Origin: Thalia democratica | Taxonomy: Eukaryota | DNA: 64,000 nt | NCBI GenBank assembly: GCA_965202585.1 | Contig: OZ241831.1 | Location: 63,922,001-63,986,000, forward strand | Direction of reading: 5' to 3' | In this document: one piece after another, positions 3,395 through 62,836 of the stretch | How positions within the stretch are numbered: position 1 is the first letter of the stretch | Layout of the letters: each line of letters starts with the position of its first letter | Made by a program: the position numbers and the translations under genes | Notes under the pieces: model-generated | What the model was told of the DNA's origin: nothing | The model's database searches: none | Seen by the model: only the letters and a program-made list of their open reading frames with translations

Positions 3395-6300
3395 ATGAAA
3401 AATAATTTTTCGTTTTTATTACTTTTGGTTGGGTTTTTAAATATTATCGGTTCAGAAGCAGCTAGAAGTAAGTAAATTGATTAAAAAAATTTATTTACTA
3501 TAACTTGCATAATATAAATATATAAAATATATTACAATTACGTTAAGCGTCATTTATTAAACTATTTTGTTGATTTAATACAGTTCCACAAAAACCAAAA
3601 CATACTTTTACTCTATATTAATAATATATTCAGAAAAATCATATATAATATAGTAAAACGTTTTTCTTTTTTTTTTTTTTGAGCAGACATCAAACGTATT
3701 GTTATTGACAATGTATGTAATATAAACAAATTTATCGTTGTGGCTGAGTGGTTAAGGCGATTGACCTGATATTAGTTGGGCTCTGCCCGCGCAGGTTCGA
3801 ATCCTGCCGACGACGATTTTTTTTTTTATTGTTAAAAAACTAAATATTTTTTACAGAATGTGCAGTGATTGATGGAGCTAACACGAATCAAGTTTGCACA
3901 CCATTTGTTTACCAGGTAAACTACTAAATTATATATAAAATTAGAAAATTATGTAAAAAATAAACTAACTTACATTTAATCTAATGCAAGTTTTAATTCA
4001 ATTAGTAAACAATCATAATCAAACAGCTGGCGTTAAACCGCTAAACCACATGTAAAAAATAAGTAAAGTTTTTTAATTGTTTTATCAGGGCGCTAATTAT
4101 ACCGACTGTGAAAGCGAATTGGGGTTAACAGGATATTACGACTGGTGCTTATTACCCGGTCAGGACGGTTTGACCTACGATAATTATAGTTACTGTGGGG
4201 ATTGTTTGGACGAAGAACCAACTTATACTACTGAGGTTTGTTTTATACTAGGGGAATTTATTTAGTTCGGATACGTATACTGATGTGTAGTAATTACACA
4301 CAAATTAAAGTAGTGCGTCTTAAAATTTAAGTGAAACATTTCTGACTTTTTAAAAAACTTTTACAAAAACTAAAAACATTTTTTGTTTGTTATATCATAG
4401 GAAGATTTTATTCAAATATTTTTTTTGCATAATATAAGGCAGTTTTCAAAAAAAAACTTTTTTGCTTAAAAGTTTTTCAAGCTAATCTTTATATTAAATT
4501 TGTCAGACTTTGCTTCACTAAGACTTTTACAGCCTTAGTTATTATTATTTTTAAATTATGGCTTTAACAACTGTTAACACTGCATATATTTATTTAAGAG
4601 TTTCCTTTTAATTTGAGTATAAATGTCTAATTATTTTTGTAACAAAACTGCTATTAACAACTTTTGTCAATAAATGTTTAGTTTTATTCATTTTTTTTAA
4701 TAATCGTTTCTAAGTGTTTTACTAAATTATTATTTCTTCCCTATAACGCAGACTAATTAAATAATAGTAGCTTGGGTTTATATAAAGCTTTTTGAGATTA
4801 ATTCTAATGATTAATAGTAATTTTAAAACGAAAACGGTTTTAATTATTGTAAGCATTATAACAATTATTTCATAACTTTGCTATCAACGACATAAAGTGA
4901 AAAAACTTTTTATTCCGCAGATTATTCCTACAAAAACTTCTCCTGAAAGTACTACTTCCGAAACTGATATTCCTGGTAAAACTACTCCTAAAAATGAAAC
5001 TTCTGAAATTATTAATCCCAAAAGTGCTACTTCTGAAACTGACATTCCTACAAAAACTACTCCTAAAAATGAAACTTCTGAAATTAGTAACCCCAAAAGT
5101 ACGACTTCTAATAATAAAACGTCCGAAATTAATAATCCTAAAAGTACTACTTTTGAAGTTACAACTCCTAACAATAATACTTCTGAATTGATTACTCCTA
5201 AAAATGTTACTTCTAAAATCAATACTCCTAAAAATACTACTTCTGAAATTATTACTACTGAATTCACTGAAAAAGTTGCGTCTTCTACTAAGTCTTCTGA
5301 AAAAGTTACAACTACTACAGAAGTCCCTGAAAATGTTACAACTACTACTGAAGTCTCTGATATAGTTACAACTACTACTGGTGCAACTGAAAAAATTACA
5401 ACAACTACTGAAGCCCCAGGTATAGTTACAATTTCTACAAAAGCAACTGAGAAAATTACAACAACTACTGAAGCCCCAGGTATAGTTACAATTTCTACAA
5501 AAGCAACTGAGAAAATTACAACAACTACAGAAGCCACTGAAGATGTTACAATTACTACAGAAGTCCCTGATATAGATACAACTACTAAAAAGGTCCCTGA
5601 AAAAGTTACAACTTTTACAGAAGCAACTGAAAATGTTACAATTAGTACTGATGCACCAGCTGTAGTTCCAGTACATACCAACGAAGAACAAACAACTACA
5701 GAAAAAGCTCCAGTAAAAGTTACTACTCCTCAAAAAACAACAGGTTTACTGTCTTATTTTGTACTTTACTTCAAAATTAGCTCGTTTGTTCCTTATAAGC
5801 CAATTTAAATTACTATTTGAAATGAGTATATAAGTCTACTAACGTTAAAATTTTAGATTAAACTTGAGTAGCTCTTAACTTGAAAAAGTTTTATTATATC
5901 AAAAAATCTAAAAGTTGTTTGTTTTAGATTGAAAATTTGAAAACAGTTTAAACAAATTATTTTTATTTTTTTTAGTTTTTCCTTTTAAGTAAACCAAATT
6001 TACAGAAACATCAAAAGGTAGTTCAACATCAGAACAAGAAGTAAATGTTACTGTTAAAGACCCAGATACAAGAACTCAAAAACCTGAAAATACAACTACA
6101 ACCCAGAACCAACCTAAATCTAAAACTACAACTATAAAGCAAACTGAAACTTCAACTAAGACCTTAAAACTAACTGAATCTACGAATACGACCTTAAAAC
6201 AACCTGAAACACCAACTACAATCTTTAAACAACTTGAATCCACAACTCAGAAACAACTTGTTACAACTACCATTGTTACTACAAACATTTCTAAAATTTC

Positions 6301-9300
6301 GCCCCCTAAACAAACTGCTTCAAACTTGATTCCTGAAGAAACTAATTCTAAAAATATTCCTAAAGAAGGCACAGAGCTATCAACAGCTATTGAAACAACC
6401 ACCCCAGTTGCTGCGACAACTTTAGAAACAACAACACAAGAAATTATCACCACAACTGAAACAAACACCCCTGAGTTTCCTGTTACAAGTTCCGAGTCTC
6501 CTGATGAAGTTTTAAGAACTACTGAAGCAAGAACTGTTACTTATCAAGAAACAACTAAAAAAGAAACAAATGCGAGTGCTAAACAAGCTACAACTAAACA
6601 CGTTACTGAAAAACTAACTACAAAACCTTATAACAAAACGAGAAAGTCTGGAGGTAAATTTATGTTTTTTTTTTTTGAAACGACACTGAGAATATATATC
6701 TTAAATGTGTTATTCTACGTTATAACTAAAAATGTATTTAAGTTTTTTTTTTGAATGAGTGTAACATAATGAAGATGAGTTTTTTTTTTCCGGTGTTTAT
6801 TATGTTAAAAAAACTTACTTTAGAAAATTTGAAAGCTGTATAAATACTTTTATTAATTTTCACCTCAACAACTAAACAATCTTTATTTCAAGCATGATTT
6901 TTTATATGTTTTACGGGATAAAAAACACAATAAATAAACATCTAACTTAAAACATCAAAGTATTTTTTTTTAACATTAAACTTTTCTCTAAAAAATATTT
7001 ACATTCTACTTCATAGTTTATTATAATGGTTATTAATGCTAAAAAGTATTTTTATAGACATTTATAGTATTAACAGCTTTAGCAACTACAAAACTTATTA
7101 GAGTCAACATTTTTTTCTAAATTCATAGGTTAAATAACTAATTTAAATTGATAGTAAATACAATATTTAATGCGTTGTATTTTGTAATTTATTCATTCAA
7201 ATATTAAATTCTACCTCATGGTTTGTAAACCTTACAATTTTTCTTTAGAAATCAGTGTAAATTACTTAGTAATAATTTATTTCAACAGTTTGCAAAGTAG
7301 AATGGAGCTGGGCGAAAGCAAAGTATTTACAGACTAATACCAGGTGCAAATCAGAAGAATGTCTGGTACATAACCCTGGTTATTTTAACGAATACGAATA
7401 TTGTTACGTTCCTGGTAAGCTTTTATATGTCTACTGTGGCAAATGTCTCGATTCTGCAGAAAAATATGAAGTAATTGATATCACCACCGCTGGTGAAAAC
7501 ACTGACATTTCAACAACTACCGATGAAAAGAACGTTTCTATGGGAACTGAGAATTATGACGTCACAAGAGAACCAAAAGAAGTTGAAAATAAACTCGAAG
7601 TTACAACAATTTTATCTGAAGAAACAACAACGGCAGATATTCTAGGTACTGAATTGAAAACAACTGAACCTGAAGTCAATAAAAACGAAACTAAAGTTGA
7701 AAACGATACAACTGTTTCTATGGAAACTGAAAGTTATGACGTCATAACTGAATCTAATCAAGTCAAAACTGAATCAAAAAGAGTTGAAAACAAACTTGGA
7801 GACACAACAACTTTATCTGATGAAGCAACAGTAGCAAATATTTCAAATACTAAAGTTAAAACCACTAAACCTGAATTCAATAAAAACGAAACTAAAGTTA
7901 AAAATGTCGATACAACTGTAAATGGTACAAATGAAAAAACAAAAACAAAAAGTAAGTTGACTGTTAAATGCTTTTTTATACAAAAATTTAATCTAGACAT
8001 AGGTAGCCAAACCCAAAAAGAATAAAATCAGTATGTTACAATCATCAATGACACCCTGATATTTTCTAAACATTGTGTTTTAATTTTTGAAACTTTTGAC
8101 CTAAATAAATACGTAAATAACAGAAAATAAACAAAATAAAAACAATAAAAGAGAAAATAAAAAAGAAAAAATTAGCTTTAAAAGTTTGTTTAGTTTTTTT
8201 TCATATAACTTTTTTTTAATTTTAATTTAATTAGTTGTAAAGTGTTTTGATGTTTTAAATATATCATAGTATATTTATTTTTCTTAACTTACAAACTTTT
8301 TTATTTTTTTTACTACAACTTTTTTCTATTGTTTTTAAATTAAAACCAAAAACTGTTTAGTTTACCATTCTTTTTTTTAAACTATTATCTTTAAGTATTT
8401 GAAAATTAAACTAATTTTTTTCTGAAGATACTTTAACTAAACAAGAAAATGCTATATATTAATTTATTTAATGTATATTAAAAGTATTTACGAATGGATA
8501 ACAACGACTTAGTTTTTTAACATTCTTAACTGGTTTCTAAAGTTACTTTTACATACATACAAACTAAACTACTTTCGAATAAAGTAAGTACTAATTTTTA
8601 GAAAGTGTACTTTTAGCAATAACACATCAAATTAAAAACTTTAAATAATATAAGTATAGCGTGAACTCAACTAAAATAAACTAAATGTTAACAAAATAAA
8701 ATTCTTTTAATTACCCACTAAATAGAAATTAACTAGTTTTTAAGTCTTTTACAGTTTTTTTTAATTTAAAGATTTAAGAAAGTTTTTTATTAAATTGTTA
8801 TTATTTTTTACAGCAAGTAACTGGGGCCTACTAGGAGCATTTATTGTTGGTTTTATCATTGTAATAACTGCCTTTATTGTCAAGTTAGTTTTCATATTAA
8901 TTAAGTTTGTTTTTTTTTCAATTGTAATAACTGTCTATATTGTCAAGTTAGTTTAAAACAAATTTACTTTATTTCCATCATTTTTATATTTATATTATCA
9001 ATTTATTTAAACAGTTTTTACAACTCCTATATAAGAATATTAGCAGTAAAGGTTGCTAAATAAACATAAAGTTGATAGTTAGCTAAAGTCTACTTGTATA
9101 TCGACTTATATTAAATAAGTTATAAAAAAACTTAAAGCTAAAGCTTAACAAACTTTTTATAATTTTTCAACTGTGTGATACTTAAATTTTTATAAAGTGT
9201 ACTTAGTAAGATTTTTGAAAATAAAAGTTCTTATATTTAAGCATCAGTCTTTAGCTCACTGTAAAATACTAAGTCTTCAAAAAACTTTCTAAACGTTATT

Positions 9301-9538
9301 AAATTGTAACTCATATATCTAGTAAAAAACAAAAAATCTCTTATTAATAACAAACATCACTTGTAAAAATTAAAAATGCCCAAAATTTTGATTTATTGAT
9401 TTTGAAATTCAAGTTAGAAAAATTTAACAGTATTTATATTAATTTTATTAAAAAGTTTTAATAAAATTAGTTTTAATTAGGAACAGGAGGAACTTAAAGG
9501 AGAAAGTAAATAAAACTAGCGATTCAGAGATGGTATAG
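3395..9538 (+). CDS. Gene 1: type I transmembrane mucin-like protein with two six-Cys (FN2-like) modules, ~846 aa
   Basis: Exons 3395-3467 (signal peptide MKNNFSFLLLLVGFLNIIGSEAAR), 3857-3915, 4089-4235 (module CAVIDGANTNQVCTPFVYQ|GANYTDC..WC..CGDC), 4921-5743 and 6006-6653 (Thr/Pro/Glu mucin), 7289-7951 (second divergent 6-Cys module plus acidic stalk), 8814-8883 (TM WGLLGAFIVGFIIVITAFIV), 9481-9538 (tail KNRRNLKEKVNKTSDSEMV*). All junctions are GT-AG and phases are consistent (2541 nt). Confidence 0.85.
3734..3815 (+). pseudogene. tRNA-Ser(TGA)-derived gene, probably pseudogene, in intron 1 of gene 1
   Basis: 82-nt type II tRNA with A box TGGCTGAGTGG, B box GGTTCGAATCC, long variable arm and oligo-T terminator. 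It has a mismatch at pair 1-72, two G-U pairs in the anticodon stem and loop CC-TGA-TA (C at invariant U33). Confidence 0.75.
4921..5700 (+). repeat. Coding tandem repeats in mucin exon of gene 1 (TTPKN..SEI-type units, then 30-nt/10-aa units; exact 60-nt duplication at 5401-5520)
   Basis: Lines 5401-5460 and 5461-5520 are identical; the translation shows TTTTEAPGIVTISTKATEKI repeats. Confidence 0.9.
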
Positions 9539-9539
9539 A

Positions 9540-9665
9540 AAGACACGTCATCCAAGTTGTTAACCTTTGTTGTTAACCAAGTTGTTAATCACGAATTCAA
9601 CCTTTTATACGTCACAACCTGAATTGATGTGACGTCACAAATCGGTGACGTCATAAAAGTTCTTC
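9540..9665. promoter_or_regulatory. Cluster of CRE-like TGACGTCA / ACGTCA motifs immediately 3' of gene 1 stop
   Basis: gtgacgtcac and gtgacgtcat palindromes plus two ACGTCA half sites within ~125 bp of CpG-poor DNA; function not demonstrated. Confidence 0.4.
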
Positions 9666-10544
9666 GAAAAGGTTTCGCGCTTAAAGCTCAGCTTTTCTTT
9701 GTTTTCATCTTTTACTCTTTTGTTTTGTACGTTTCAAATAGAATTATATAGAATTATTTGCGATAAATAAATACAAAATTTAATTTGGTGTAAATTTGCA
9801 TGACTTTCGATTAATTGTTACTTTTGGTGAATGGAATGTAAAAATCTTTTTGGTGAATATATTGTAGACTACATATATAAATGGTGTACTAACATTTTTA
9901 TTGCAACACTGAATCAAACTTTCAATCATGAAATTGTTATATTTAGTAAATGTTCTTACAGCTAATTTGTTTTAACCTGAAACAAATTTTCACAAACTAA
10001 TTTTTGGCTTATGGTTAACAAAATGTATAATTTTCAGTAGTAAACGGTAGCTTTTAAAACTAACTTAAGCAAAGGTAATCTAATATGAAATTTAAGTTAA
10101 AAAGTTATAAGTTTTTTAAGTTTTTTGTAAATTATAAATAAATGATATTTTATTATATGCTTTTAAGAATAGTTAAATTAAACCAATAAATAAATTATTT
10201 AATTAATCCACCAATCATACAAAACTGTAACATGCATGTTTATTAACAACATTATATCATATTTACTCTTTTTTTAATCACAAAAATAACGAAACATATA
10301 TTTGACTTCTGCATAAAACAATTAGCATTAAATCAAAACTTTTTTTAAGGTCCTTGCTTGTTCTAAAAGGACTTTTTTTTAATCGTTTTAAGTCTCTTAA
10401 AACTTGCTAATATGTTTAAAAAAACGATGGTTTTCATTTTTTACTTGAGTAGTAAAAATTAATTTTCTACTATCTATCATAGACTTTATTAAAAATAAGA
10501 CTTTTTCAAACACTTTATATATAGTTTAAGTCCTAAAATAGTAT

Positions 10545-13321: not shown

Positions 13322-16300
13322 ATGGAAAAGAAGTTGTTATTATTGTTGTTTCTGATTGGATTTCTAAACATTATTGGGTCGGAAGCGGCTAGAAGTTAGT
13401 ATTTTAATTTAATATAAATAATATAATTGTTATACTTTACAGACTTTTTTTTTTTAATATATTTTTACAAGTATGATTGTAAATGCCTCAAAGTTTCTTA
13501 TGAAAATGGTATAACTTTATAAGCTTAACGTTATATTTTTATTTATTTACCAGTATTTTGCTTATTTTTCGATAAATTTTCGTATGCTTGAAATTTAATT
13601 GTAATAAAATTACTTTTTTGGTGTAACATAAGTACTGACATCTACATAAAGTTTTTATTCAAACCTTAAGCTTGCGAACATTTGCTTACAGTATATTGAA
13701 CAATATTTAAGTATATAAACCAAATTCCTTATGGCCGAGTAGTTAAGGCGGCTGTTTAACAATCCAATGATCTCTGCGCGCGTAGATTCGAATGCTGCCT
13801 TTGTAATAATATTTATTTCAACGTTTTCGCGTAAAACTAAATATTTTTTTCAGAATGTGCAGTGATTAACAAAGCCAGAACGAATCAAGTTTGCACACCA
13901 TTCACATACCAGGTAAACCACTAAATTATATATAAAATAGAAATTATGTAAAAAATTAATTAAATTATTGATCCAATGCAAGTTTTATTCAATTAGTAAA
14001 CAGCTGGCGTTAAACTACTAAACTATATGTAAAATTAGAAAATTATTTAAAAAATAAATTAACACACAATTGGTTTAACGCAAGTTTTAATTAATCAGCA
14101 AACAATCATAAGCAAACAGATAGTGATAAACCACTTAACTGTATGTAAAATTTATTTAACTAAACTGTATTTAAAAAATAAATAAAATAGTTTATTTCTT
14201 TATCAGGGTGTTAACTATACTGACTGCGTATACCATTGGACAAACTACTACTGGTGCTTGCTACCCGGTCAGGACGGTATGACCTATGACGCGTACAGTT
14301 ATTGTGGGGATTGCTTGGACGAAGAACCCGCCAAGGTTTGTTTCACGTTAGGGGAATTTGTTTTAATATAAGTGATAACGGTTTGCCTTCAGTACAAAAA
14401 GAAGTGAAATTGAAAAGAATGTTGAATTAAAGATTAACTACAATTTCAGTTTATAATTGTTGTTAATAGTTGTTTTTTTCAACAGGCCATGGTACCCACT
14501 GAAAAACCAAAAACAACAAAAATCGCAGAAACTACTTCTGAAGAATCCAAAGCACAACCGACAACCGTTGAAATCCCAACAACAACCTTGAAAACAACAA
14601 CACAAGAAACAACCACCACAACTGAAAGAAATCCTCCTGAGTTACCCGTAACAACGACTGCAGAAGCCCCTGAAAAAGATACAAAAACTACAGATGCCCC
14701 TGAAAAAGATACAACGACTACAGAAGAACCTGAAAATGTTCAAACTACAACAGAAACCCCTAAAAATGTTCAAACGACAACAGAAGCCCCTAAAAATGTT
14801 CAAACGACTACAAAAGTCCCTGTTGTAGTTCCTAAAAAAGATTCAACCACCACTGAGGTACCTGAGTTACCAACAACCACTGAAGATTCTGAAAAAATTC
14901 AGTCTTCTACAAAATCGCCAATTGAAATTCCGGTTGATGCCAACAAGGAACAAACTACTGAACAAGCGAAATATACAACTCCCCAAACAACACAAGAAAA
15001 AACAACAACTGAAAAGAGTCCTCCCGAGTCACCCGTGTCAACGACTACACCTGAAAAAGTTACAACAACTACAGAGGCACCAATTGTAGTTCCAGTAGAT
15101 ACCAACGAAGAACGAACAACTACAGAACAAACTACAGTGAAATCTACTTCTATTCAGCCAACAACAGGTTTAATGTTTTATTTGGTACATTATGCTTGCG
15201 GTTAAGAAATATATTTAAGAATTTCAGAGGTTTAAATTTTACTTGTGCAGTTTTAGCTTATAATTTTGTGTTACGTCATTAATTCTTAAAACACCATATT
15301 TTCAAAGTTAAAAGTTGAAACAGTATCAAAACAAATAACTTTGTTTAGGTTAACTTTATTGTAAAACTTTGAACGAATTCACAGAAACAACCACAGAAAA
15401 AGAAGCAGCTGTTCCTGTTGAAGACCCTTCTACGACAACCCAGAAACCTGAAACTTCAACTACAACCCAGAACCAACCTGAAATTACAACTACAACCCAG
15501 AATCAACCGGAAAAATCAACTACAGCTCCCATTGTTACCACGACAAGCGAAAAGCCAGCTACAACGCAGAAAGCTAATAAGAATGTTGAGGCCACAACTG
15601 AAAAAGGTGTGTGGTTTGTTTAGCAATAAAATTGCAAGTCTTTGCGCATTTTTACATTTAAGTTTTTATTTAATACTTTTAATATGTTGTTCGTTATTTT
15701 TAAAACTGAAAGTTATATTAAAATAGGTTTAACTAACTTTATTTTCAAGTGAGTTGTTTCATCTTATTAATTTATTTTTCAAATATATACTTCCTTGTTG
15801 GAATTATGCATTAAATTTTAAACTAAAAACACTGAAAACATGTTTTTGAAGTTACAAAATTCTTAAAAATTCTCAACCTTTTTAAGTTTTTGATTTTCAA
15901 ACTGTATTTTGTTTAGAATTTACCCACAAATTATGATAAAGTCAATAAAATTTCAGAAGATCCAGTTACGACTTCAATAAAAAAACCAACTAAAAAAGTT
16001 AAAAATCAAGGTGAAACACAAGAAAAAGAAAACGTCTCAAGTAAGAATTTGAAAACACATACTACTTAATAAAATAACTTTTAATTTGTTTTTCTTTTGT
16101 AATAAGTAAACAAAAAACTATTATAAGTTAAGCACTTATAGATGTCTTAAAAATTACTGTTTGCAATTAACTTCATTATATATTTATAAACTAAAAATTC
16201 AACTTTAAACTGTTAAAATACTTTTTGTTGTAAAAGTTAAAAAATATACATAGGACAAAATCTAAAACTAACATTTTTTATCAGAAATAGTAATAGGCCT

Positions 16301-20891: not shown

Positions 20892-20892
20892 T

Positions 20893-20975
20893 TATGACGA
20901 CACTAAACAATTATGACGTCACACAGTGCTGTGATGTGAGGTAATACTACGTCATGTTGATTTATGACGTCACTA
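20893..20975. promoter_or_regulatory. Cluster of CRE-like TGACGTCA motifs immediately 3' of gene 2 stop
   Basis: Two atgacgtcac palindromes plus tacgtcat within ~80 bp; same relative position as in gene 1. Confidence 0.4.
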
Positions 20976-49412: not shown

Positions 49413-51552
49413 ATGAAGTTCATTCTATTTTTTGTGTTATTTGGATGCATTCAATCCTTTTTATTCGTTAAAAGTGAGTTTTTATTTAATATTTGGTAGC
49501 TTTTTGTTGAACAGTTATTTATGTTAATTTTTTGGAGTTATATAAGTTTAATTCATATTTTCTATCAAATTTATTAATTCAAAAAAGCTAAAGTTAACAA
49601 AGTCTAGTAGCAAACCTAAAATGAATTTATAATTATTAATCTATATTTAAGTTTTCAAAATAATAAACTTTTTCAGGTAATGATTTTGATTTTCCAGCGA
49701 ATCATAAAACAACAAATTCTGAAGATAAAATTTCTACAATTAGCACAAATGAAGATAAAGTTACAAAAGAAACATCTATTGAGTCTTCAGGAGATTTTAT
49801 TGACGATACAGAACCATCAATAGAAGCTACAGGCAATGTTGTTGATGACAATGAATTTGATGGACAACTAGACGTTCCAAAAAGTACCAAAGGAAAAAGT
49901 TAGTATTTCTTGTATGACTTAAATATACTAAATAAAGTTTTAAAAACAGCAAGTTTTTGGTTTCAAACTCATTAGCAAATCTAAAAAAATAGATCTATTT
50001 TATTTATTCACTGTATTAGTATAATATTTACCAACAATATAAAATCTATCAATTGAAAAAAATAAATTTAATTTTGAAATTTTCGAAACAGAATGCGTTT
50101 ATGGAACCAATAAAATTTGCACACCATTTACATATAGAGGTATCAATTATGACGAGTGTTATGCTGGTTTGTATTCGTATCAGTGTTTGGTAGATGGTGA
50201 ATGGTCTTATTGTGGAGAATGTATAGAAGAAACAACAGTTTCTGATGCTACAACAGTTAGTATTACGGAAGTTACAAAAGAAACATCTGTAGAGAATTCT
50301 GGCGACAATACTGACGACACTGAATCATCTGTAGAAACTACTAACAGTATCATTAATGAAAATGAATTAGATGAACAATTGGACGTTCCTAAAAGTGCTA
50401 AAAAACAAAGTTTGTTGTGTGTTATAAAGTTTCAAAATTTTCATTATACTTAATAAAGTAAAGCTTTAAAAACAGCAAGTTTTTGGTTTCAGAACGTAAT
50501 AGATAAAATTTATAAATAGCACTTAATTGTTCCCAAGTAGATTTAAATAATGTTCAAATTACTTATTAACAATTTTAAAAGATTAAAGCTGTTTTGTTTA
50601 TTTCTCCACTGTATTAACATTATAACTATTATTAATTAATTTAATTTACCAAGAATATGATATCTAAATATAAAAAAACGAATTCACATATACTAATTTT
50701 AGTATATTTCATACAGAATGTGTTGAAGGTACCAATAAAGTTTGTACACCATTTACTCATGATGGTGTCGATTATGATGATTGCTATGCCGGAGTTTTTT
50801 CCTATCAGTGTATAGTTGATGGTGAATGGTCTTATTGTGGAGATTGTATAGAAAACACAACAGTTACTGATGCTATGACAGTTAGTACTACGAAAGCTTC
50901 AAAAGAAACATCTGTTGAGAATTCAAGAGATTCTAATGATGATACAGAATCATCTTTAGAAGCAACAGGGGGTGATATTCATAATACAGAACCACCTATA
51001 GAAACTACTGAGGATAGTATTCATAATACAGAACCATCTATAGGAGCTACTGAGGATAATCTTCATAATAGAGAGCCATCTATAGGAGCTACAGGCAAAC
51101 CTACAGAGTCTACAGAACCGGATGAACAATTAGACGTTCCAAAAAGTGCTAGAAAACAAAGTTTGTAAACACTGTATTGGTTTTGATACAACCAAAATAA
51201 AGATTAACACCATTTCAATTAAATAATTAGTTGAAAAATTGCACTTGAGTTAATATAGAAACATTTTGTTTACGTTGTTAGCTAGTTTCACAAAATACAT
51301 AAACTTCTAAGTAAAAATTATAAAAGATAAAATGTAATAATGAGCTGTTCATCCAAAATAAATTGATTTAAATTAAAATATTTTCAAACAGAATGCGTCC
51401 AAGGAACCAATATAGTTTGCACACCATTTGTTCATAATGGTAAAGTTTATGACGATTGCGCTACGAGTTACTGGAATGGTGATTGGTGTTTAGTAGAATC
51501 TCCAGTTAAATCATTTTATCCTTCTTGCGGGGAATGTGTTGAACAATTATAA
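49413..51552 (+). CDS. Gene 4: secreted acidic protein with three six-Cys FN2-like modules, ~401 aa
   Basis: Exons 49413-49473 (signal MKFILFFVLFGCIQSFLFVK), 49677-49898, 50092-50409, 50717-51160, 51392-51552 (ends CGECVEQL*); phase 1 junctions, 1206 nt, no TM. Confidence 0.8.
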
Positions 51553-52157
51553 TTATATACCGAACTGTCGTATTTTGTTTTAAAGTTTATTACTTACAAT
51601 TGAGCTTTACAAATTAAATCACGTTTTACCAAGACATTTATTTTATTCATCATCATTGCAATACACTAAGATAAAAAATCAACTTTTATTCTTCACTTTT
51701 AGCGTTCATATTTTTGTAGTTGAGTTTTTTAATAATTTTTTATGGAACAATTTTTTTTTTGAAATATCAAAAAAATACAACTATAATATTTATAATGTTT
51801 TTAACTTTATTTCAAAAGTTTTTTTGATGTTCTTGTTTTTTAAGCATAAATTGTTTTAATTCAAACTTATCATTAGGTCATGAAAATTGTTTTTGATATT
51901 GCATTTTGTTTCAGAATTAAGTATTTTTATGCACAATCATACTATGTAATAGTTTAAAAAATATTAGAGCATTTAGTTGTTTTATTAAAACTAAATATAA
52001 TTCTACCATCTCAAATGAATTAAAAGACATTTAGTTTAGTTTTCGATTTTGTTTTTATTATGCCGAAAATTCTAAATCTAAAATTTTCCCAACCATTATC
52101 ATCATATACTTTTATTCATTCATAATATTTATATTCCACAGAAGTACATAAATAAAA

Positions 52158-55003
52158 ATGAAGTTTGTTCTATTTTTGGTTTTGTTCGGGTTCATTCAAT
52201 CTTTTTCTGATGCAGCAAGTAAGTTTTTATAAATGTTATAACTTGTTATAAAATTTAATTAATAAGAGTTTTAGCATTTATATATTGCAGTTGAAAGTTA
52301 AAGTTTAATTAAAAACGTGAGTATTTGTATTTTTTTCCGTTGTTTATAATTGTTGTGTAAAATATTATAAATTACACACAAGGTAATAAGATAAAACAAA
52401 AAAAATTATCTTAACATGCTATGTAAATTATCTCGTATATTATTTATTTTTAACATCAACTTTAATTATTTCATTTAGTTTTGAAAATTATATATTTTTT
52501 TTTAATATCAACTTTAATTATTTCATTTAGTTTTGAAGCTTGTATATTTATTTTTAACATCAACTTTAATATTTAACTTTGTTTTAAAGTCTGTATGAAA
52601 TTATATATCTTTTGGCAGAGGAAAAAATATACCATTAATTAAGCTTTAAATTTAAGTTTCAGTTCAAAATATCATAAATTATTTATTTTCGACATCATTT
52701 TTGTTTCATTTAGTTTCGAAGTACATAAATTAAATTTATTTTTATTTTTTAAAGTTTTATTCAATTTATGAAGTATAATTATTCACAGATGAGTGTATCG
52801 CGGGAACGAATGAGAAATGCGTTCCTTTCACATGGCAAGGAGCCACTTACGATAAATGCGAGGGTTACTGGATTAAGTGGTGTGTCGGAAAAGACCAATC
52901 CGGATCGGAATATTCTCCCTGTGGCGAATGTGTTGAACCAGAACCTATTGGTTGATAATTTGTTTCTTATATTAATACTAGTAAATATTTTTAATTGTTG
53001 TTCAACCAATTATTACTGCTGGCTAATATTTTTATTTCTTAGAATCTACTACTGGTTAATAATTTGTTTGTTATTTGTAAAAAGTTAATATTAGTATTTT
53101 TATTTGTTACTTTAGAAATTACTTCTACTGGTTAATATTATTACTTCTTATATAAACAATTATTACTGTTGGTGAATTAAGTTGATTTTATTTTACCAAA
53201 AGCTACAACCGGTTAATATTTTACTTTGTTATTTAACCAATTGTTATATTAAATAATATTTTATTTTTGTTATATGATCAGGTTAATTTTAATTGTTATA
53301 GAAACAAATGTTTTTACTGTTTGTTTTTTTTAATTTTTAGAGAACCAATTATTAATTAATTATTTTTTTTTTGTTATTTGGGTGCATTCAATCCTTTTCA
53401 TAGTTTTTATTTAATATTTGGTAGTTTTTTGTTGAACAATTGTTTATGTTAATGCAGTTATATAAGTTTAATTCGTAATATTAAAACGCCATATTTTCTA
53501 TCAAGTTAAATTATTCAAAAAATCCAAAAGTGGCAAACCTAAAATAAATTTATAATTATTAATCTATATTTAAGTTTTCAAAATAATAAATTTTTTTAGG
53601 TAATGAGTTTGATTTGCCAGCGAATCATAAAACAACAATTTCTGAATATGAAGTCACTACAGTTAGCACAAATGAAGATAAGGTTACAAAAGAAACATCT
53701 ATTGAATCTTCAGGAGATTCTATTGATGATACTGAAACATCTGTAGAGAATTCAGGCGACAATACTGATGATACAGAATCATCTATAGAAACTACTAACA
53801 GTACCATTAATGAAAATGAACTAGAAGAACAATTAGACGTTCCTGATAGCGCTAAAAAACAAAGTTAGTTATGTATTATAAAGTTTTAAAATTTTCATTA
53901 TACTAAATAAAGTAAAGCTTTAAAAACAGCAAGTTTTTGGTTTCAGAAGATTATAGATAAAGTTTAGAAATAGCACTTAAATGTTCCCAAGTAGTTAAAA
54001 ATAATGTAAAATTTACCTATTAGCAATTCTAAAAGATTAAAAATAACTTATTTATTACTTAACTTTATTAACATAATAACTATTATTAATATTTTTTTTT
54101 ACTAAGAATATAATATGTAAATATAAAAAACGTATTCAAATATACTAATTTTAGTGTTTTCAAAACAGAATGCGTTTATGGAACCAACAAAATTTGCACA
54201 CCATTTACATATAGAGGTGTCAATTATGACGATTGATATTCTGGATATTGGTACTATCAGTGTTTGGTAGATGGTGAATTGTTACATTGTGGAGATTGTG
54301 TAGAAGACACAACTGTTTCTGATGCTACAACAGTTAGTACTACGGAAGTTACAAAAGAAGCATCTGTTGAGAGTTCAGGAGATTCTAATGATGATACAGA
54401 ATCATCTTTAGAAACAACTGAGGGTAATCTTCATAATACAGAAACATCTATTGAGAATTCAGGCGACAATACTGATGATACAGAATCATCTATAGAACCT
54501 ACAGAGGATAATATTTATACTGAATCATCTATAGGAGCTACAGAGGATAATCTTCATAACACAGAACCATCTACAGGAGCTACAGGCAAACCTACAGAAC
54601 TGGATGAACAATTAGACGTTCCAAAAAGTGCTAGAAAACAAAGTTTGTAAACACTGTATTAGTTTTGATACAACCAAAATAAAGATTAACAACATTTCAA
54701 ATAAAATATTAGTTGAAAAGCTACAATTAAGTTAATAAAGAAACATTATTTTTTACGTTGTTATTTGGTTCCACAAAATACATAAGTTTCTAACTAAAAT
54801 TTTTAAATGGTTGATTATACTAATTATAATATTTCCAAACAGAGTGCGTCCTAGGCACCAATATAGTTTGTACACCATTTGTTCATAATGGTAAAGTTTA
54901 TGACGATTGCGCTACAAATTACTGGAATGGTGATTGGTGTTTAGTAAAGTCTCCAGTTCAATCATTTTACCCTTCTTGTGGGGAATGTGTTGAACAATTA
55001 TAA
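52158..55003 (+). CDS. Gene 5: chimeric secreted FN2-like protein (gene 6-type exons 1-2 joined to gene 4-type exons); in-frame TGA in exon 4, so possibly a pseudogene
   Basis: Exons 52158-52218 (MKFVLFLVLFGFIQSFSDAA), 52789-52950, 53600-53863, 54169-54642 (TGA at 54234-54236 replacing a conserved Cys), 54843-55003. Confidence 0.7.
53361..53420 (+). pseudogene. Decayed copy of the gene 4 signal-peptide exon (no ATG, donor deleted) inside gene 5 intron 2
   Basis: ttgttatttgggtgcattcaatcctttt..agtttttatttaatatttggtag aligns with 49434-49499 but lacks the ATG and the ttcgttaaaagtg donor segment. Confidence 0.8.
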
Positions 55004-55597
55004 TTATTTTTATATATCGGACTGTCGTATTTTGTTTTACAGTTCATTACTTACAATTGAGCTTTATAAATTAAATCACGTTTTACCAAGACATTTTTTT
55101 TATTCATAATCATTGAAATTCATTAAGATAAAAAATCAACTTTTATTCTTAACTTTTAGCGTTCATATTTTTGTAGTTGAGTTTTTTAATAATTTTTTAT
55201 GAAACAATTATTTTTGAAATATCAAAAAAATACAACTATAATATTTATAATGTTTTTAAATTTTATTTCAAAAGTTTTTTTGATGTTCTTGTTTTTTTAG
55301 CCATAAATTGTTTTAATTCAAACTTATCATTAGGTCATTAAAATTGTTTTTTATATTGCATTTTGATTCAGAAATGAGTATTTTTATGCACAATCATACT
55401 ATGTAATAGTTTAGAAAATATTAGAGTATTTAGTTGTTTTTATTAAAACTAAATATAATTTTACCATCTTAAATGAATTAAAAGACATTTAGTTTAGTTT
55501 TCGATTTTGTTTATCATGACCAAAATTTTCCCAACCATTATCATCATATACATTAATTCATAGTTTATTTATATTCCACAGGAGTTAATAAATAAAA

Positions 55598-58500
55598 ATG
55601 AAGTTTATTCTCGTTTTGGTTTTGTTCGGGAGCATTCAATCTTTTTCTGATGCAGCAAGTAAGTTTTTATAAATGTTATAACTTGTTATAAAATTTAATT
55701 TAATTTAAAACGTTCGTACATATTTGTATTTTTTTCCTTTGTTTATAATTGTTGTGTAAAATACTATAAATTACACACAAGGTAATAAGATAAAAAAAAA
55801 ACAATAAATTAGTCTTAACATGCTATGTAAATTATCTCGTGTATTATTAATTTTAAACATCAACTTTAATTATTTTATTTAGTTTTAAAGTATATACATT
55901 AAAATTAATTTAGTTTAGTTCTAAAGTGTGTATAAAAGTATATATTATTTTACAGAGGTAAAAGAAAACATAAAATAAGCTTTAAATTTAAGTTTCATTT
56001 CGAAATATCATAAATTATTTATTTTCAACATCATTTTTGTTTCATTTAGTTTCAAAGTACATGAATTAATTTTAAACTTATTTTTGTTAACAGTTTTATT
56101 CATTTTAGTTCTAAATTATTCACAGATGAGTGTATCGCGGGAACGAATGAGAAATGCGTTCCTTTCACATGGGAAGGTGCCACTTATGATGCGTGCGAGG
56201 GTTACTGGAGCAAGTGGTGTGTCGGGAAAGACCAATCAGGATCGGAATACTCATCCTGTGGCGAATGTGTCGAACCACAACCTACTCCAGGTTGATAATT
56301 TGTTATATTACTACTAGTAAATATTTTTAATGGTTGAATAATTAAATGTATGTCTTGGTTAATAGTTTTAATTGTTGTTCAACCAATTATTACTACTGGT
56401 TAATATTTTTATTTCTTAGAACCTACTACTGGTTAACAATTTTAATTGTTATTTGTAAAAAGTTAATTCTGGTTAATATTAATACCTTTGTTATTGAACA
56501 AAAAATTACTATCAGTTAATGTTTTTAATTGTGTTTAACTAATTATTACTACTGCTTAGTGTTGGTTAATTGTTGAACAATCAATTGTTACTACTGGTTA
56601 ATATTGGTTAAATGTTAATTAAATAATTGCCTATATAAGTTAATATTTTTATTTGTTATATAACTAAAAATTACTACTGGTTAGTATTTTTAATTGTTCT
56701 TTAGAAAAAAATAATACTGTAATATATAAATGATAAATACAATAAAATAAATATTTTTATTAGTTAAATAACCGAAAGTCACTATTGGTTAATAATTTTG
56801 TTTGTTGTAAAACTGATTAATTCAACTGTTTAATATATTATTTTTATTAAAGCAGTTATCACAACTGATTAACATACTTTAGTTTTATAGAAATAATTTT
56901 TATTACTGTAATTTTTTCCTATATAACAATTTATTTCTACTGTTTAACGTTTTTATTTCTTATATAAACAATTATTACTGTTGGTAATTATAAGTTGATT
57001 TTATTTTATCAAAAGCTACAACTGGTTAATATTTTACTTTGTTAATTAACCGATTGTCATATTAATTAATGTTTTGTTTTTGTTATATGATCAGGTTAAT
57101 TTTTGTAAATTGTTAACAAATGAAACAAATGTTTTTATTGTTTATTATTTGTTAATTTTTAGAGAGCCTGTTATTACTAATGATTAATATTTTTAATTAA
57201 TATCGAACAAATTATTAATACTTGTTGTTTATTTAAAGCATTTATATTTTGTTTCTTATTATATGATATTTTGACTTAGTTTTACTATTATTATTAGCAA
57301 ATACTGAAAAAACTTAAAAAACAACAACAATTATTCACTGGTTGGTAAATAAAATAAACAGTAAAGAATACTAACAGTCGTTTCATAATATTCAATAAAC
57401 TATGTTTTTAATATAAGCATTATTTTTCTTATCAACAGAGGCAACTACAACTAAAAGAACAACGACCACTACCGGTTAGTAATTAAAATTATCAATAACT
57501 AATGTAGTGCTTCAAAAATGTGAAAAAAAATTGTATAAGAATATAAATAATTAATACAATGCTTCAACAATGTAGTATAAATAAACAAAACATTTTTGAA
57601 TAATAATTTTTTTTTACAAATGTTGTACAAATTTCTAAAATAGTGTATAACAATTTTAATTAACCTAACAAAATTCAAATAACTAACAAAACGCGCTTCT
57701 AGAGTAATTTTTATTATTAACAGAGCCTTCACCAACAACTACTACCGAAAGAACTACGACTACTACTGGTTAATAATAAAAATAATAATTATAAATAATA
57801 AATAATAAAAAAATATATAGAATGAATATTATGTTTTTTCTTTAAAACATACTAATACGTGTTTATAAAATCAATTAGTAAATTTTAAATTATAAGTAAA
57901 TTATAATTATATACAGAACGTACTACAACAACAACTAAAAGGACAACAACAACTGGTAAGTAACAAAATGTTTTTAATGATAAATATGTTACAAAAGTGT
58001 TTTTATGATAGACAATTATTTTTTACTTATTATGAACAGAGCCTACTACTACTATCAAAAGGACTACAACAACAACTGGTTAATAGTTACTTTTTTACAG
58101 TTAATATATGGTGTATTGTTTCAATAATTTCTAAAAAATAATAAAGCGTTTTATTTAAAAGAATAAAAATATAGTATGTAGCTTTTGAATGATGAAGATT
58201 AAAAAAATGTTTTTTTAATTTAAGAGCCAACTACTACTAGTTACTCAGAAAATTACGATGAAGAATTTGACTACAAAAGTATGTTTAATTGTTTTTTACT
58301 TTGAAATAATATAATACAATAATTTATAGTAAATTTTGTACAAGTCAAGACGACAGTTTAGGATATTTGTTTGTAAAACTATTTAAATAATAAATATTTC
58401 TATGAAAATGTTCATTAGCTGAGTCGTGCATTGTAAAATATTTCCAAATCTTTTTTATGATCCACTCCATTAAAAAGTAAATCTATATTAAATCTCATTA

Positions 58501-61500
58501 AAATCTCCCAGGTTTTTAATGCTGAAGACCTCAAATTTTCAGCAAATATTCGTTGCACGATTGATAGTTTTAGTTTTTAAGAAAACTCAACGAAAGAAAA
58601 CAACAAAAAAAGAAAAAAATATCATTCATTTTAACTATCAAAAACTTAAAAAATAATTGTATAGCCAACAGCTTATTTAGTAAAGATCGCATTGTATTGG
58701 AAAAGTTTTGCCGGCCAATGTTGTTTGAAATAACTGTAATAATTAATATAAAAACACTTTTTTAAAGTAAAAATGTGATACAATAATCAATAACAGCTGT
58801 AATAAAGAATAATGATTAAGTAAGAAGCCTTATTATGAGTTTTATTTTTTATTGATTTAAAAATTTTTGTTTTAACAAAAATTTTGAAAAGTACCTTGCA
58901 GTATTTGCTTTAACGGAATGTATTTTAATAATGACTTTTTCAATGCTATTACGTCATAATATATTCATTACGTCACAACAGTGGAATCTCCAGCTGTAGA
59001 AGAAGAAGGTTCAACAGACGACGATGCAACTGAAGATGACAAAACTGCCCCCGTTGACGATGATGACAAAACTACAGTTGTCATTTCAACTGATGATGAT
59101 GACAAAACTACACCTGTAGACGGTGGCGACAAAACTACAGTCGTCATTCCAACTGATGGTGATGACAAAACTACAGCCGTCATTTCAACTGATGTAGATG
59201 ATAAAACTTTCCCCGTTGACACAACTACAGTCGCCATTTCAACTGACAATGATGACAAAACTACAGTCGCCATTTCAACTGACAATGATGACAAAACTAC
59301 AGTCGCCATTTCAACTGACAATGATGACAAAACTACAGAAGTCGTTTTAACTGATGACGAAGATGAAGGTAAAGCATCTGGTGACATTTCTACTTCTGGT
59401 GACGATATTTTAACTAATGATGCTGGTGACAAAACTTCTGTTAAAGATTCTGGTGACAAAACTTCAGTTAAAGATGCTGTTGACAAAACTTCAGTTATAG
59501 ATGCTGTTGACAACATTTTAACTAAAGATGACGATTTGGATGTGAAGAAAGAAGGTTGTTAGTTTTAATTGGAAAAAAAATATTGATTTAATTTACATAT
59601 TATTGCTAATAAATTATAATTTTTGACTGCGTAAAAAATTAAACCAAGCATCCAACGTGTCTATTATTAGTTATGGACATACAAAATAAAACTTGTAAAT
59701 TAAAAAGCAGACTATGTTTAAGTTTTGTGTTTTTAACAAATAAAAGTGTTAGTTTAATTTCTACCACGTTAAATTTTTCTAACTTATTTTGAATTATTGA
59801 ATGTACGAATATTCATTTTGTTTTTACAGTTGATTTATTTTTTTAGTCGACAAACCTATGTTAATTAAAATTAAACAGTGATCAGAATTATAAGCAACTA
59901 CTGTAATAAATGAAATTTATTAATGATTAAGAAAACCTTTTTGTCTGTTTAATAAAATGAATGCTGAATTTAAAAGTTATGATTATATAGAATTGCAAAA
60001 CCTAAATAGTTTTAGAAATTAACACAAAATATTAAAATTAATAGAGAGACAAAATTTTTATTACCTTAGTTTTAGATGCGCTAAGTTTTTTTCCTTATTT
60101 TTATTTAATTTAGATTTAACTTTATACAACTTAAAATGACAACACTTGTTCTTTTTTTATAAATTATTATAATTAACTTTTTATTTTTATTCAGATGACA
60201 AAATACCGACTGGGTTGTCTCTGGAGAATACAAATAAAACTGATGAAAATAAAGGTTAGTTATTTATTTGATTGAATAAAACTTAAGTATTTGTTTTCCA
60301 AGAAGTTTATATCCAAGCTTTGCATATGAATTAATAAATTGATGTTTATATTTTCTCATGTTTTAGTAGAGCTCTTTCCAGTTAAATTTTAAAGTTAATA
60401 AAAAGAATAACAGAATTTATAAGTTATTAATACATTAATTAATATAAATTATTTGATTTATTAACTATTATTTTTTTTGCATATTGTTTAAAAATAACTA
60501 ACATAAAATCCTAGATTTTAAACTAGTTTTTTAATATTTATAATAACTTAAAAACAATCTGAAAATGCTAGTTTTTTTCAATACGTTTAAGTATTTTATA
60601 ATAAATGTTTTTTTTCGTATATTTTATTTAATTGTGATTTATCAACTTTTGTGGATTTTAGTTAAAAATAGATTTAAACATTTTGAATTTATATTAAAAG
60701 CATAAATTGCCATTTCAAATAAACTAAATATTTTTTCTTACAGATAAAGTATCCACCTTAAATATAATTTTTTAACTTAAAGTTCATAGTTTTTCAAGAA
60801 AAAAAAAATTTCTAACTACTAGATTAGATAATCAAACAATTAACTTCTTAAACTTTTTTTGTTATTCCATATTTTAAACTAATCTATTGAATAAAAAAAC
60901 CCTGATGTTTTTATTTGCCAAACTAATTAACAAAAATCAACGACTATCTACGCTTTTGACAATGTAATTCTTACAAGCTCGTATAAAGTTGACGCGACAA
61001 CAACCTCTTATGACGTAATAATTGCATAAAATCGTGTGAATATATACGTCACAATCAACTTAGTTACAAGCGCCCGGCTAGCTCAGTCGGGTTCGAGCCC
61101 CACGTTGGGCGTGATTTTTATTTTTCATAGAGAATTTCAATGTTGCAATTTTGATAAATAATTTTTTTTTCAGAAGGAATCCCGATTGTCTATGTTAAAA
61201 TGTTTATTATTTAATTTTTTTACAGAAGGAATTCTGATTGTTTATGTCGCAACATTATTAATTAATTATTTAAATTATTTATTATTTATTATTTATTTCA
61301 GAAGGAATTCCGATAGTTTATGTTGAAGTTTTTATTATTTAATTAATTTTTCAGAAGGAATTCCGATCGTTTATGTCGCAGTTTTTATTATTTAATTTTT
61401 TTTTTCAGAAGGAATTCCGATCGTTTATGTCGTAGTGCCAGTTGTTGTCGGACTGTTGATCGTTTCTGTGGTATTGGTGTTTATCAAACAGTTAGTTTTT

Positions 61501-62836
61501 ATTTATTTATTAATTAGTTTTAAATATCTATTTTGTAACACTCATTTTTTTTAATAATTAACACTCAAGTATTTTTTAGACAGTTAGTTTTTTGAATATA
61601 TTAAACGTATGTTTTTTTATAGTTATCAAACAGTTAGTTTTTTATTTTTATTAAACATACAGATTTAATGTTTATTTTGCAATATTCGTGTTTATAAAAC
61701 AAATAGTTTTTATTGTTTATTGGGATAGTTTTTGATATTTATTATTTAATATTTGTCTTAATTTTTAACAAATAGTTATACGTTTCAAATAAGACTTAGC
61801 ATACATTACAACTTGCAAAGTTAGCCTTTATAGTAACGTTTTTGAACAATTTATTTAATCATTAAGTTAAGTAGTCTATTAATGAAATATTTTTATATAT
61901 TGTTAATGTATGTATTTAAGAATAGAGTTATATTTGAATAAAATAAATGCAAGAGTACTTAACTATATTATAAGCTAAAAATATATCTTTGAAGTTTAAA
62001 AAATGTCTAATACATAATTCATAAAGTGAAACATTAAATTTTATTTCTTTTATTTACAAATTTAGATAAATCACTTAATATAATAATCTTATTTTTCTGA
62101 AATAAAATGTTTAGTGGAAAAATATATATACTAAACTTGAGTTTTTCAAGAATATATGAAAATTATTTTTTTTGTATAAATTCACCAACTGATCTGTGGA
62201 AATTTAATAAACTCAGCTAGAATTTTAACTTATAAAATAATAATTAAAATAATTAAATAAACAGTCGCAGTAATTCTGCCGGAAAATACATAAAAAAGGA
62301 GAATATTGAAAAAGATATTGAAGAAAATATTAGTTAGTTTGTTTTATATAATAAGAAATTAAAGCAATTATTTGTTTTGTTTTAATTAAAAATATATTCA
62401 TCAATAAGTTAATAATTATTTTTTAACATAAATTATTAGTTAATTTAAAATTACATACAACAAGTAATTCAAAATATTAGTTACTTTGTTTTTTTTTACA
62501 CACAGTAATAGCTAATTTAAATTCACATTAATATTTTACTCTTAAGTATTAAAAATTGAGAGTGTACATTACATAGTTAGATTTTTAATAGAATTTTTTG
62601 TATTTTATCTATAAGGAGCAAAAGTGTAAGTAATAAAAAATCATTTATTTTTAGTATTTTATTTTGTTAAAGTTTTCACAAATTGAAATATTTTCTATAT
62701 GCTTATAAACAAGAAGGTAAAGCTTTTTAATGGTTTTTTATTTTAAAGTTATTTACTTTTGATTGCCTAAACTAATTAGGAAGTTTGAAGTTATTTTTAT
62801 TCTTATTTATTATTTATTCACTTTTTAGGTCAATGA
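55598..62836 (+). CDS. Gene 6: type I transmembrane protein with one six-Cys FN2-like module, micro-exon Thr stalk and Asp-rich repeats; C-terminus uncertain
   Basis: Exons 55598-55658, 56126-56290, 57439-57474, 57724-57768, 57917-57955, 58040-58078, 58225-58278, 58982-59554 (STDNDDKTTVAI repeats), 60195-60254, 61409-61490 (TM IPIVYVVVPVVVGLLIVSVVLVFI), 62265-62332 (HRSNSAGKYIKKENIEKDIEENI). The last exon probably starts at 62829, but its frame depends on a possible 10-nt micro-exon at 62616-62625. Confidence 0.75.
61072..61111 (+). pseudogene. tRNA-Lys(CTT) with 33-nt internal deletion
   Basis: GCCCGGCTAGCTCAGTCGG|GTTCGAGCCCCACGTTGGGCG matches both ends of canonical metazoan tRNA-Lys(CTT); the 3' part of the D arm, the anticodon arm and the variable loop are missing. 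Confidence 0.9.
61165..61490 (+). repeat. Five tandem copies of the 3' splice site plus start of the gene 6 TM exon
   Basis: ttt(t/a)cag|aaggaat(t/c)c(c/t)gat.gt.tatgt at acceptors ending 61173, 61225, 61301, 61354 and 61408; only the last continues into the full TM exon. Confidence 0.92.

Follow-up and report, generated by a model that had tools for sequence, protein, structure and literature searches.

A tandem cluster of genes for divergent, six-cysteine fibronectin type II-like modules, with membrane-anchored and secreted forms, in Thalia democratica

A stretch of 64,000 nucleotides from Thalia democratica (GenBank assembly GCA_965202585.1, contig OZ241831.1, positions 63,922,001 to 63,986,000 of the forward strand), referred to here as the window, holds a tandem cluster of genes: five are intact, and one is a chimera broken by a stop codon. 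All six lie in the same direction on the plus strand, and each encodes a signal peptide followed by one to seven copies of a module of ~48 residues with six Cys, related to the fibronectin type II (FN2) domain. Genes 1, 2 and 6 also encode a transmembrane (TM) segment; a TM segment was sought in the spliced chains of genes 3, 4 and 5, and none was found. In genes 1, 2 and 6 there are mucin-like linkers with much Thr; those of genes 3-6 are rich in Asp, Glu, Ser and Thr, and gene 3 also has a Tyr-rich stretch. Ser and Thr together make up 30% of genes 1 and 2, and Asp and Glu 19-22% of genes 3-6. The window reads as animal-like DNA, being AT-rich (20-38% GC per 2-kb segment, mostly 22-29%, with zero N), with short exons and GT-AG introns. 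Coordinates are collected in Table 1.

The modules were located with a profile hidden Markov model (HMM) of seven copies, which was searched against all stop-to-stop pieces of the six-frame translation of the window. Significant matches occur on the plus strand only. Thirteen modules lie within single exons (E values from 1e-8 to 2e-28); with the two that are interrupted by an intron there are 15 good copies, and with two degenerate ones 17, to which a four-Cys remnant and an intronic fragment can be added. The module exons are all phase 1-1, and the Glu that seems to stand ahead of the first Cys is the last G of the intron read through; the true residue spans the junction and is usually Lys, its codon divided as A|AA. 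For the gene chains, every junction was read by eye in the sequence and the exons were joined by script. The hand-built frames are open over 846 (gene 1), 1209 (gene 3), 401 (gene 4) and 363 (gene 6) amino acids.

The first-pass annotation of this DNA had described six co-directional signal-peptide genes with 17 full modules and one partial module. The six signal exons and the strand of all module matches agree with that description and the count is reproduced, with two of the 17 degenerate and the remnant at 47384 as the partial copy. The coexistence of membrane and secreted architectures is likewise upheld by the TM segments of genes 1, 2 and 6 and the lack of one in genes 3-5. A tail had been given to all three membrane genes; it was recovered for genes 1 and 6, where it is short and basic at first, then acidic, and the tail exon of gene 2, sought by reading the sequence, was not found. 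The chimeric exon chain of gene 5 is in phase, but its coding sequence is interrupted by a TGA. Finally, the cluster had been drawn to end at 62836, and the coding sequence of gene 6 already ends at 62337.

Table 1. Positions of the genes, modules and other features in the window (position 1 is its first letter; blank cells, no entry)
Feature	Position	Strand	Basis
Signal-peptide exon starts	3395, 13322, 33769, 49413, 52158, 55598	+	
Gene 1, type I membrane mucin, 846 aa, 8 exons	3395-9538	+	GT-AG junctions read by eye, open frame
Gene 1 exons	3395-3467, 3857-3915, 4089-4235, 4921-5743, 6006-6653, 7289-7951, 8814-8883, 9481-9538	+	
Gene 2, paralogue of gene 1, at least 418 aa	13322-16437	+	spliced open chain
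Gene 2 exons	13322-13394, 13854-13912, 14207-14335, 14486-15167, 15385-15606, 16347-16437 (TM)	+	
Gene 3, secreted, 1209 aa, 13 exons, without TM	33769-48762	+	3630-nt chain open
Gene 3 exons 1-7	33769-33826, 41238-41396, 41743-41892, 42083-42268, 42493-42618, 42990-43280, 43583-43921	+	
Gene 3 exons 8-13	44169-44348, 44543-44992, 45946-46272, 46378-46578, 47384-48406, 48623-48762	+	
Gene 4, secreted, 401 aa	49413-51552	+	spliced chain and Tara cDNA match
Gene 4 exons	49413-49473, 49677-49898, 50092-50409, 50717-51160, 51392-51552	+	
Gene 5, chimera	52158-55003	+	spliced chain, sequence comparison
Gene 5, gene-6-type signal and module exons	52158-52218, 52789-52950	+	
Gene 5, copies of gene 4 exons 2, 3 and 5	53600-53863, 54169-54642, 54843-55003	+	
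Gene 6, type I membrane protein, 363 aa translated chain, ~390 aa with two further mini-exons	55598-62337	+	
Gene 6, 5' exons	55598-55658, 56126-56290; mini-exons 57439-57474, 57724-57768, 57917-57955, 58040-58078	+	
Gene 6, 3' exons	58982-59554, 60195-60254, 61409-61490 (TM), 62265-62337 (tail)	+	
TM segments	8814-8883 (gene 1), 16347-16437 (gene 2), 61409-61490 (gene 6)	+	
Single-exon modules	41237, 42085, 42989, 45945, 46377, 48622, 50091	+	HMM
Single-exon modules, continued	50716, 51391, 52791, 54168, 54842, 56128	+	HMM
Modules interrupted by a phase-0 intron	3880/4083 and 13880/14195	+	HMM
Reference module, first sequence of alignments A1 and A2 and of the structure model	46378-46532	+	HMM E 5e-28; Pfam fn2 21.5 bits
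Degenerate module (gene 3)	44171	+	HMM E 0.46
Degenerate second module of gene 1	7289-7455	+	invisible to HMM; aligned to gene 1's own module
Four-Cys remnant (gene 3)	47384-47460	+	
Intronic copy of the next exon's start	41128-41160	+	short HMM match
Tandem duplication, ~3.9 kb	unit A 49419-53355, unit B 53356-57194	+	self-blastn, breakpoint alignment
Acceptor and first ~26 nt of the gene 6 TM exon, in four additional tandem copies	61165-61408	+	sequence reading, self-similarity
Long terminal repeat (LTR) retrotransposon, 6.3 kb, outside the family, in gene 3 intron 1	33936-40193	-	LTR comparison

In gene 1, the signal peptide is followed by a module with an internal phase-0 intron, a Thr-rich stalk of ~490 amino acids, the degenerate second module, the TM segment (WGLLGAFIVGFIIVITAFIV) and a basic tail of 19 amino acids. 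The degenerate module aligns with the C-terminal two thirds of the gene's own module (42% over 43 amino acids). Gene 2 encodes a signal peptide, one module that is again divided by a phase-0 intron, an extended Thr-rich stalk and a TM segment. Its DNA is 72-81% identical to that of gene 1 over the 5' half; a candidate exon at 15917 was dropped since it broke the frame. A tRNA-Ser(tga) gene lies within intron 1 of gene 1 (3733-3816, plus strand), and its counterpart in intron 1 of gene 2 (~13713-13800) is 74% identical and is not called by ARAGORN.

Gene 6 runs from one module through four mini-exons, an Asp/Thr-rich exon, the small exon at 60195 and the TM exon to a tail of 24 residues. The mini-exons are 36-45 nt long, phase 1-1, and each encodes approximately E-x-TTTT-KR-TTTTT; because the stalk is coded in this way, its length could vary by exon skipping. 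The tandem copies of the TM-exon acceptor could allow a switch between an anchored and a released form of the protein. When the first of these copies is read from its own acceptor, it gives EGIPIVYVKMFII and then a stop, and the predicted product is anchorless.

The largest of the secreted forms is the product of gene 3, with seven modules (the one at 44169 being degenerate) and the four-Cys remnant. All 12 introns are phase 1, and TAA follows directly after the last module (48762). An acceptor for exon 7 at 43532 was tried and breaks the phase; the one at 43582/43583 restores the phase-1 chain. A second signal exon was searched for between 34 and 49 kb, and none was found. The acidic exon (47386-48405) found no homologue when used as a search query, and the connectivity of the exons is predicted from phase and open frame. 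The linkers are acidic and rich in Tyr and Asp, with 14 copies of a SSGNDSDDTEVEM repeat, and most of the 25 Ser-Gly dipeptides fall within this repeat. Proteoglycan core proteins bear glycosaminoglycan (GAG) chains on Ser-Gly sites with acidic surroundings; from such sequence context, GAG attachment can here at most be predicted. Tyr flanked by Asp or Glu is the typical context of tyrosine sulfation. Exon 44543-44992 is Tyr-rich with flanking Asp and Glu (for example DGDYSDEDVEGYFDEDTGDYKYYTDDDDD), and a similar stretch precedes a module in P0030, a protein from the Tara collections.

The retrotransposon in gene 3 starts 110 bp into an intron of 7.4 kb. Its 300-nt LTRs are 100% identical and its gag (38684-40021) and pol (35214-38750) open reading frames (ORFs) are intact, and the insertion is thus very recent.

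Gene 4 combines a signal peptide with three modules separated by acidic linkers, and its product ends in ...CGECVEQL-stop. It takes part in a tandem duplication whose units, A and B, are ~80-93% identical. One breakpoint lies inside the signal exon of gene 4, and the copy of this exon at ~53350 has neither ATG nor donor, so that the copied gene 4 body can be expressed only when it is spliced onto the duplicate of the gene 6 5' end. The phases permit this: signal exon 52158 and module exon 52789 can be spliced to the copied body, which gives the chimera, gene 5. The in-frame TGA (54234-54236, codon 185) replaces the third Cys of the module at 54168, the second in the chimera; the product would therefore end after 184 residues in this assembly.

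The module itself is a divergent, six-Cys member of the FN2 superfamily, with PF instead of FPF. The first-pass annotation had proposed the relationship, and it is supported. Pfam fn2 (PF00040) is the only recurring Pfam match, found in five of eight window modules at 13-21.5 bits, though below the gathering cut-off; the relatives P0001 and P0088, taken as whole proteins, reach 30 bits and lie above it. In a search of PDB sequences with the module profile, nine of ten matches are FN2 proteins (PDC-109, fibronectin, MMP-9 and MMP-2), PDC-109 being the best with an E value of 5e-4; the tenth is an unrelated protein (E 8.8). A profile search of 1.84 billion proteins also returns canonical FN2 proteins of Oscarella (sponge), Acropora (coral) and Sardina (fish), with E values from 1e-20 to 1e-29. 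When an alignment of 37 modules (A2) was compared with one of 41 canonical FN2 domains (A3), hhalign gave a probability of 96.9% and an E value of 1.9e-10 over 39 columns.

Structure prediction points the same way. AlphaFold2 with the 13 window modules alone reached a predicted local distance difference test (pLDDT) score of 55; this alignment was replaced by the 37-sequence one, with which the score was 90.9 and the model has four short strands; the FN2 fold is made of two small antiparallel sheets. When this model was run against the PDB with Foldseek, the best 17 matches were all FN2 domains (TM-score ~0.5), from factor XII, MMP-2, uPARAP/Endo180, IGF2R, fibronectin and MMP-9; those of PDC-109 and PLA2R follow a few rows further down. 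All 24 rows from VIA-align are FN2 domains as well (Z 2.1-3.4 over 41-51 residues).

The six Cys are invariant in the module alignments. C10, C23, C32 and C47 (37/37 modules) align to Cys1-4 of FN2 in both HMMER and hhalign. FN2 disulfides join Cys 1-3 and 2-4; the outer Cys pair of the window module probably forms a third, kringle-like bond, predicted to tie the two ends together. The motif PF-x-Y-x-G-x-x-Y-x-x-C is kept, the first Phe of FPF being absent through a one-residue deletion. Most modules retain the aromatic positions in PF-x-Y, x-x-Y-x-x-C, W-C and [YW]-S-x-C, which align with those of PDC-109.

With known FN2 domains (fibronectin, MMP-2/-9, factor XII, BSP/PDC-109, the mannose-receptor family and IGF2R), the window module shares the four core Cys, the motif PF-x-Y-x-G-x-x-Y-x-x-C and, in part of the copies, W-C, a similar size, the predicted fold and phase 1-1 exons, as in mobile extracellular modules. 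It differs in being one residue shorter before PF (TPF or VPF, not FPF) and in having an extra Cys eight residues before Cys1, a C-G-E-C end and a variable third loop, and some copies are without the Trp. The extra N-terminal and C-terminal Cys had been taken at first as a departure from FN2. That view does not stand: canonical FN2 domains of the FPF type with this C-x7-C ... C-x2-3-C frame were found in two copepods, Lepeophtheirus and Caligus, in the sponge Corticium, and in an environmental protein that ends in C-G-D-C. Invertebrate FN2-only proteins with six Cys (the 'MMP2/MMP9-like' proteins of Lepeophtheirus and Caligus, the 'fibronectin-like' protein of Corticium and Oscarella XP_065838285) share both the outer Cys pair and a tandem, secreted FN2-only architecture, and the Oscarella proteins include C-V-P-F copies as the window modules do. 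However, most of them keep FPF and WCAT and are without long mucin-like or acidic linkers, and no TM anchor was seen among those found. The FN2 domain is not itself a novelty, and many invertebrates have its six-Cys frame; the combination of a divergent FN2 head with a mucin-like or acidic stalk is neither named in databases nor found in the papers searched.

The membrane forms also recall membrane mucins and sialomucins (MUC21/epiglycanin, CD164/endolyn and the syndecans), which combine a signal peptide and an extended stalk, Thr-rich or acidic, with one TM segment and a short tail. Genes 1 and 2 have Thr-rich repeats, gene 6 has its TTTT-KR-TTTT mini-exons, all three have the TM segment and genes 1 and 6 the tail; O-glycosylation is predicted only. 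Faint leads to MUC21, syndecan and MGC-24 came from a language-model search (Atlas) and from Pfam. These proteins are without an FN2 head, however, and the likeness is one of architecture, not of demonstrated sequence homology; Pfam on the orthologues found no SEA or other mucin-specific domain. Another Atlas lead (score 0.77) is PIK3IP1, which like the window membrane forms is a type I membrane protein, of small size, whose one head belongs to the kringle/FN2 superfamily, but its head is a full kringle of ~80 amino acids, and it has no mucin stalk. Kringles are ~80 amino acids long with three disulfides (1-6, 2-4 and 3-5). The six-Cys frame of the window module is compatible with an outer 1-6 bond; at ~48 amino acids the module falls well short of a kringle's length, and a single weak kringle row (3k65, TM-score 0.35) appears among the fold matches.

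The sequencing runs found for this genome are DNA-like, with introns covered as deeply as exons, and expression was therefore considered through relatives. The search of 1.84 billion proteins returns ~30 proteins with the same C-x7-C-[TV]-P-F module; all ten that were checked come from marine metagenomes or metatranscriptomes and none is named, in keeping with an earlier suggestion that the family is unnamed and so far lineage-restricted. Literature searches found no description of this family in the papers searched. The protein P0091 (498 amino acids, four modules) from the Tara Oceans metatranscriptomes, encoded on an intron-free contig of 1702 nt (L001), has the same order as gene 4, the same junction residues (..KKQ-K-C..) at the intron sites of the window and the C-terminus ..CGECIEQL. 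Two more, P0016 and P0089 (304 and 305 amino acids), lie on intron-free contigs of 1 kb and correspond to every mapped part of gene 6 in the same order, down to the K-H-R junction residues and the small 60195 exon: identities are 65% and 61% in the module, 89% and 85% in the TM segment and 81% in the tail, and the stalk also maps.

Another Tara protein, P0007, has two modules, a Thr/Glu-rich stalk, a TM segment and a tail. Its cDNA (L004, positions 1-45) opens with the SMART adapter tail ACATGGG; next comes ATTTTCTATTTGAATAAG, which we take to be the ascidian-type tunicate spliced leader; family members are therefore made as capped, trans-spliced mRNAs. The form on L004 is a one-base-longer variant of the ascidian leader and could serve as a taxon marker for such contigs. 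Orthologues of the family are expressed, and the family has so far been seen only in plankton tunicates that use an ascidian-type spliced leader.

For several window modules the identity to Tara sequences is 74-79%, whereas the nearest paralogue in the window, duplicates apart, reaches 49-60%. Module 1 of gene 3 is 76% identical to P0031 vs 49% within the window, module 2 is 79% identical to P0013 vs 60%, and the gene 6 module is 74% identical to P0016 vs 60%. The paralogues thus predate the species split and are conserved, and the family's description as rapidly evolving in the first-pass annotation is not borne out. Within it, heads and stalks change faster than the TM segment and tail, and the gene 6 orthologue occurs as several variants, 82-95% identical, in Tara samples. 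The family grew by duplication and shuffling of phase 1-1 exons and by segmental duplication.

We regard the cluster as probably encoding an extracellular binding system, in which FN2-like heads are carried on mucin-like or acidic stalks. The anatomy of such a system, as laid out above, is very likely correct; the role as binders is more tentative. FN2 domains bind via a pocket lined with aromatic residues and hold collagen-like chains or phosphorylcholine. The heads in the window would keep the pocket used by other FN2 domains and would thus act as extracellular binders. Membrane forms would be extended, hydrated, glycosylated surface molecules, each presenting one binding head, and the secreted forms with three to seven heads might serve as soluble cross-linkers or coats for the same ligand, at the surface of an epithelium, within the tunic or in secreted mucus. 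The stalks, either Thr-rich (30% Ser and Thr) or acidic with Ser-Gly and Tyr-Asp runs, have a composition that may fit putative O-glycosylation, GAG attachment and Tyr sulfation.

Several observations weigh against this picture. The exon chains of genes 1, 2 and 3 are predicted from splice phase and open frames, the runs found for this genome being DNA. All window modules tested fall below the Pfam fn2 gathering cut-off (22.2 bits), three of the eight having no match. In absolute terms the fold comparisons score weakly (Foldseek E ~0.4, Z ~3), which can be put down to the small size of the domain (~50 residues). The Trp of the WC motif, kept in nine of 14 single-exon modules, is replaced in the other five by Q, M, K, Y or S. 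Exons and introns of units A and B have diverged about equally (82-93% vs 74-92% identity by segment), so the young copies show no sign of constraint.

A more specific version of the extracellular binding system would be a two-part surface system of pelagic tunicates, in which tethered FN2-like mucins and multi-head secreted acidic partners bind the same ligand and assemble, anchor or release an extracellular product that only these animals make, for instance the mucous feeding net or the gelatinous tunic, with the gene 6 acceptor copies as the switch between anchored and released protein. We offer this as speculation with a low chance of being right.

Non-self or pathogen recognition, by membrane receptors and soluble opsonins or decoys that diversify under host-pathogen or allorecognition pressure, is also unlikely to be the answer. 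Tandem expansion with a recent duplication and a chimera would suit it, as would the two haplotypes ~10% apart over the locus in the DNA runs, the 82-95% variants of the gene 6 orthologue in Tara samples and an ectodomain identity (65%) below that of the TM segment and tail (81-89%). However, module-level orthologues are kept at 74-79% between species, the high heterozygosity may be genome-wide, and the tails have no signalling motif or domain recognisable by Pfam on the orthologues.

The vertebrate seminal proteins BSP and ELSPBP1, which have several FN2 domains and acidic, glycosylated extensions, are secreted and coat the membranes of sperm via phosphorylcholine binding. That the cluster encodes gamete-coat proteins working like them seems to us improbable: the likeness is at the domain level only, and the membrane-anchored mucin-type members would be left unexplained, even if PDC-109 is the best PDB sequence match, genes 3-5 encode FN2-only secreted proteins with acidic linkers and a cnidarian FN2 relative has been auto-annotated as epididymal sperm-binding protein-like. 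It is very improbable that the cluster consists mostly of decaying pseudogenes or a mis-joined assembly, as the TGA in gene 5, the degenerate gene 3 module (44169) and the retrotransposon in gene 3 intron 1 might suggest, since spliced frames of 846-1209 amino acids cannot stay open by chance in a genome of 23% GC, orthologues are transcribed, and DNA contigs from two runs cover the region. Very improbable too is an unrelated small disulfide knot or shortened kringle sharing only Cys spacing with FN2, for which single modules under the Pfam cut-off, three disulfides recalling kringles and the PIK3IP1 lead could be cited, given the hhalign probability over 39 columns, an fn2 cluster as first Atlas match, and a sole, weak kringle row for a module far shorter than a kringle.

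The locus defines an unannotated, expressed gene family of trans-splicing plankton tunicates. Thaliaceans are ecologically important and make unusual extracellular materials, and the secreted and surface binders proposed here are for that reason candidates for a part in making or retaining them. How the family grew can also be read from the locus: through phase-1 exon shuffling, segmental duplication leading to a chimeric gene, and stalks coded by mini-exons. For tunicate biology this is of use; mechanistically it brings no surprise, as known parts (FN2 head, mucin-like or acidic stalk, with or without a TM segment) are combined.

Some smaller features of the window can be added. Long ORFs on the minus strand (4870-5733, 47480-48073 and 58968-59516) are antisense readings of repeats and were rejected as genes. 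Between 16.5 and 33.7 kb there is no family member, only tRNA genes, with four (Pro, Arg, Gln and Gly) at 27.9-33.4 kb. Two haplotypes can be told apart over 41000-46999 in contigs from DNA runs X1 and X2; they differ by ~10% (in one case by 38 differences along 389 bp) and have small indels, and DNA run X3, from organism B, contains a similarly diverged copy. Finally, tandem 'echo' copies of splice junctions occur in adjoining introns (41128-41160; 61165-61408; ~8925-8950; 53048 and 56392-56781). Among them are echoes of the gene 3 exon 2 acceptor with the codons that open this exon, of the donor of the gene 1 TM exon, and of the gene 6 TM-exon acceptor (the four extra copies), as well as six ACTACTG|GTTAAT-like donor copies.

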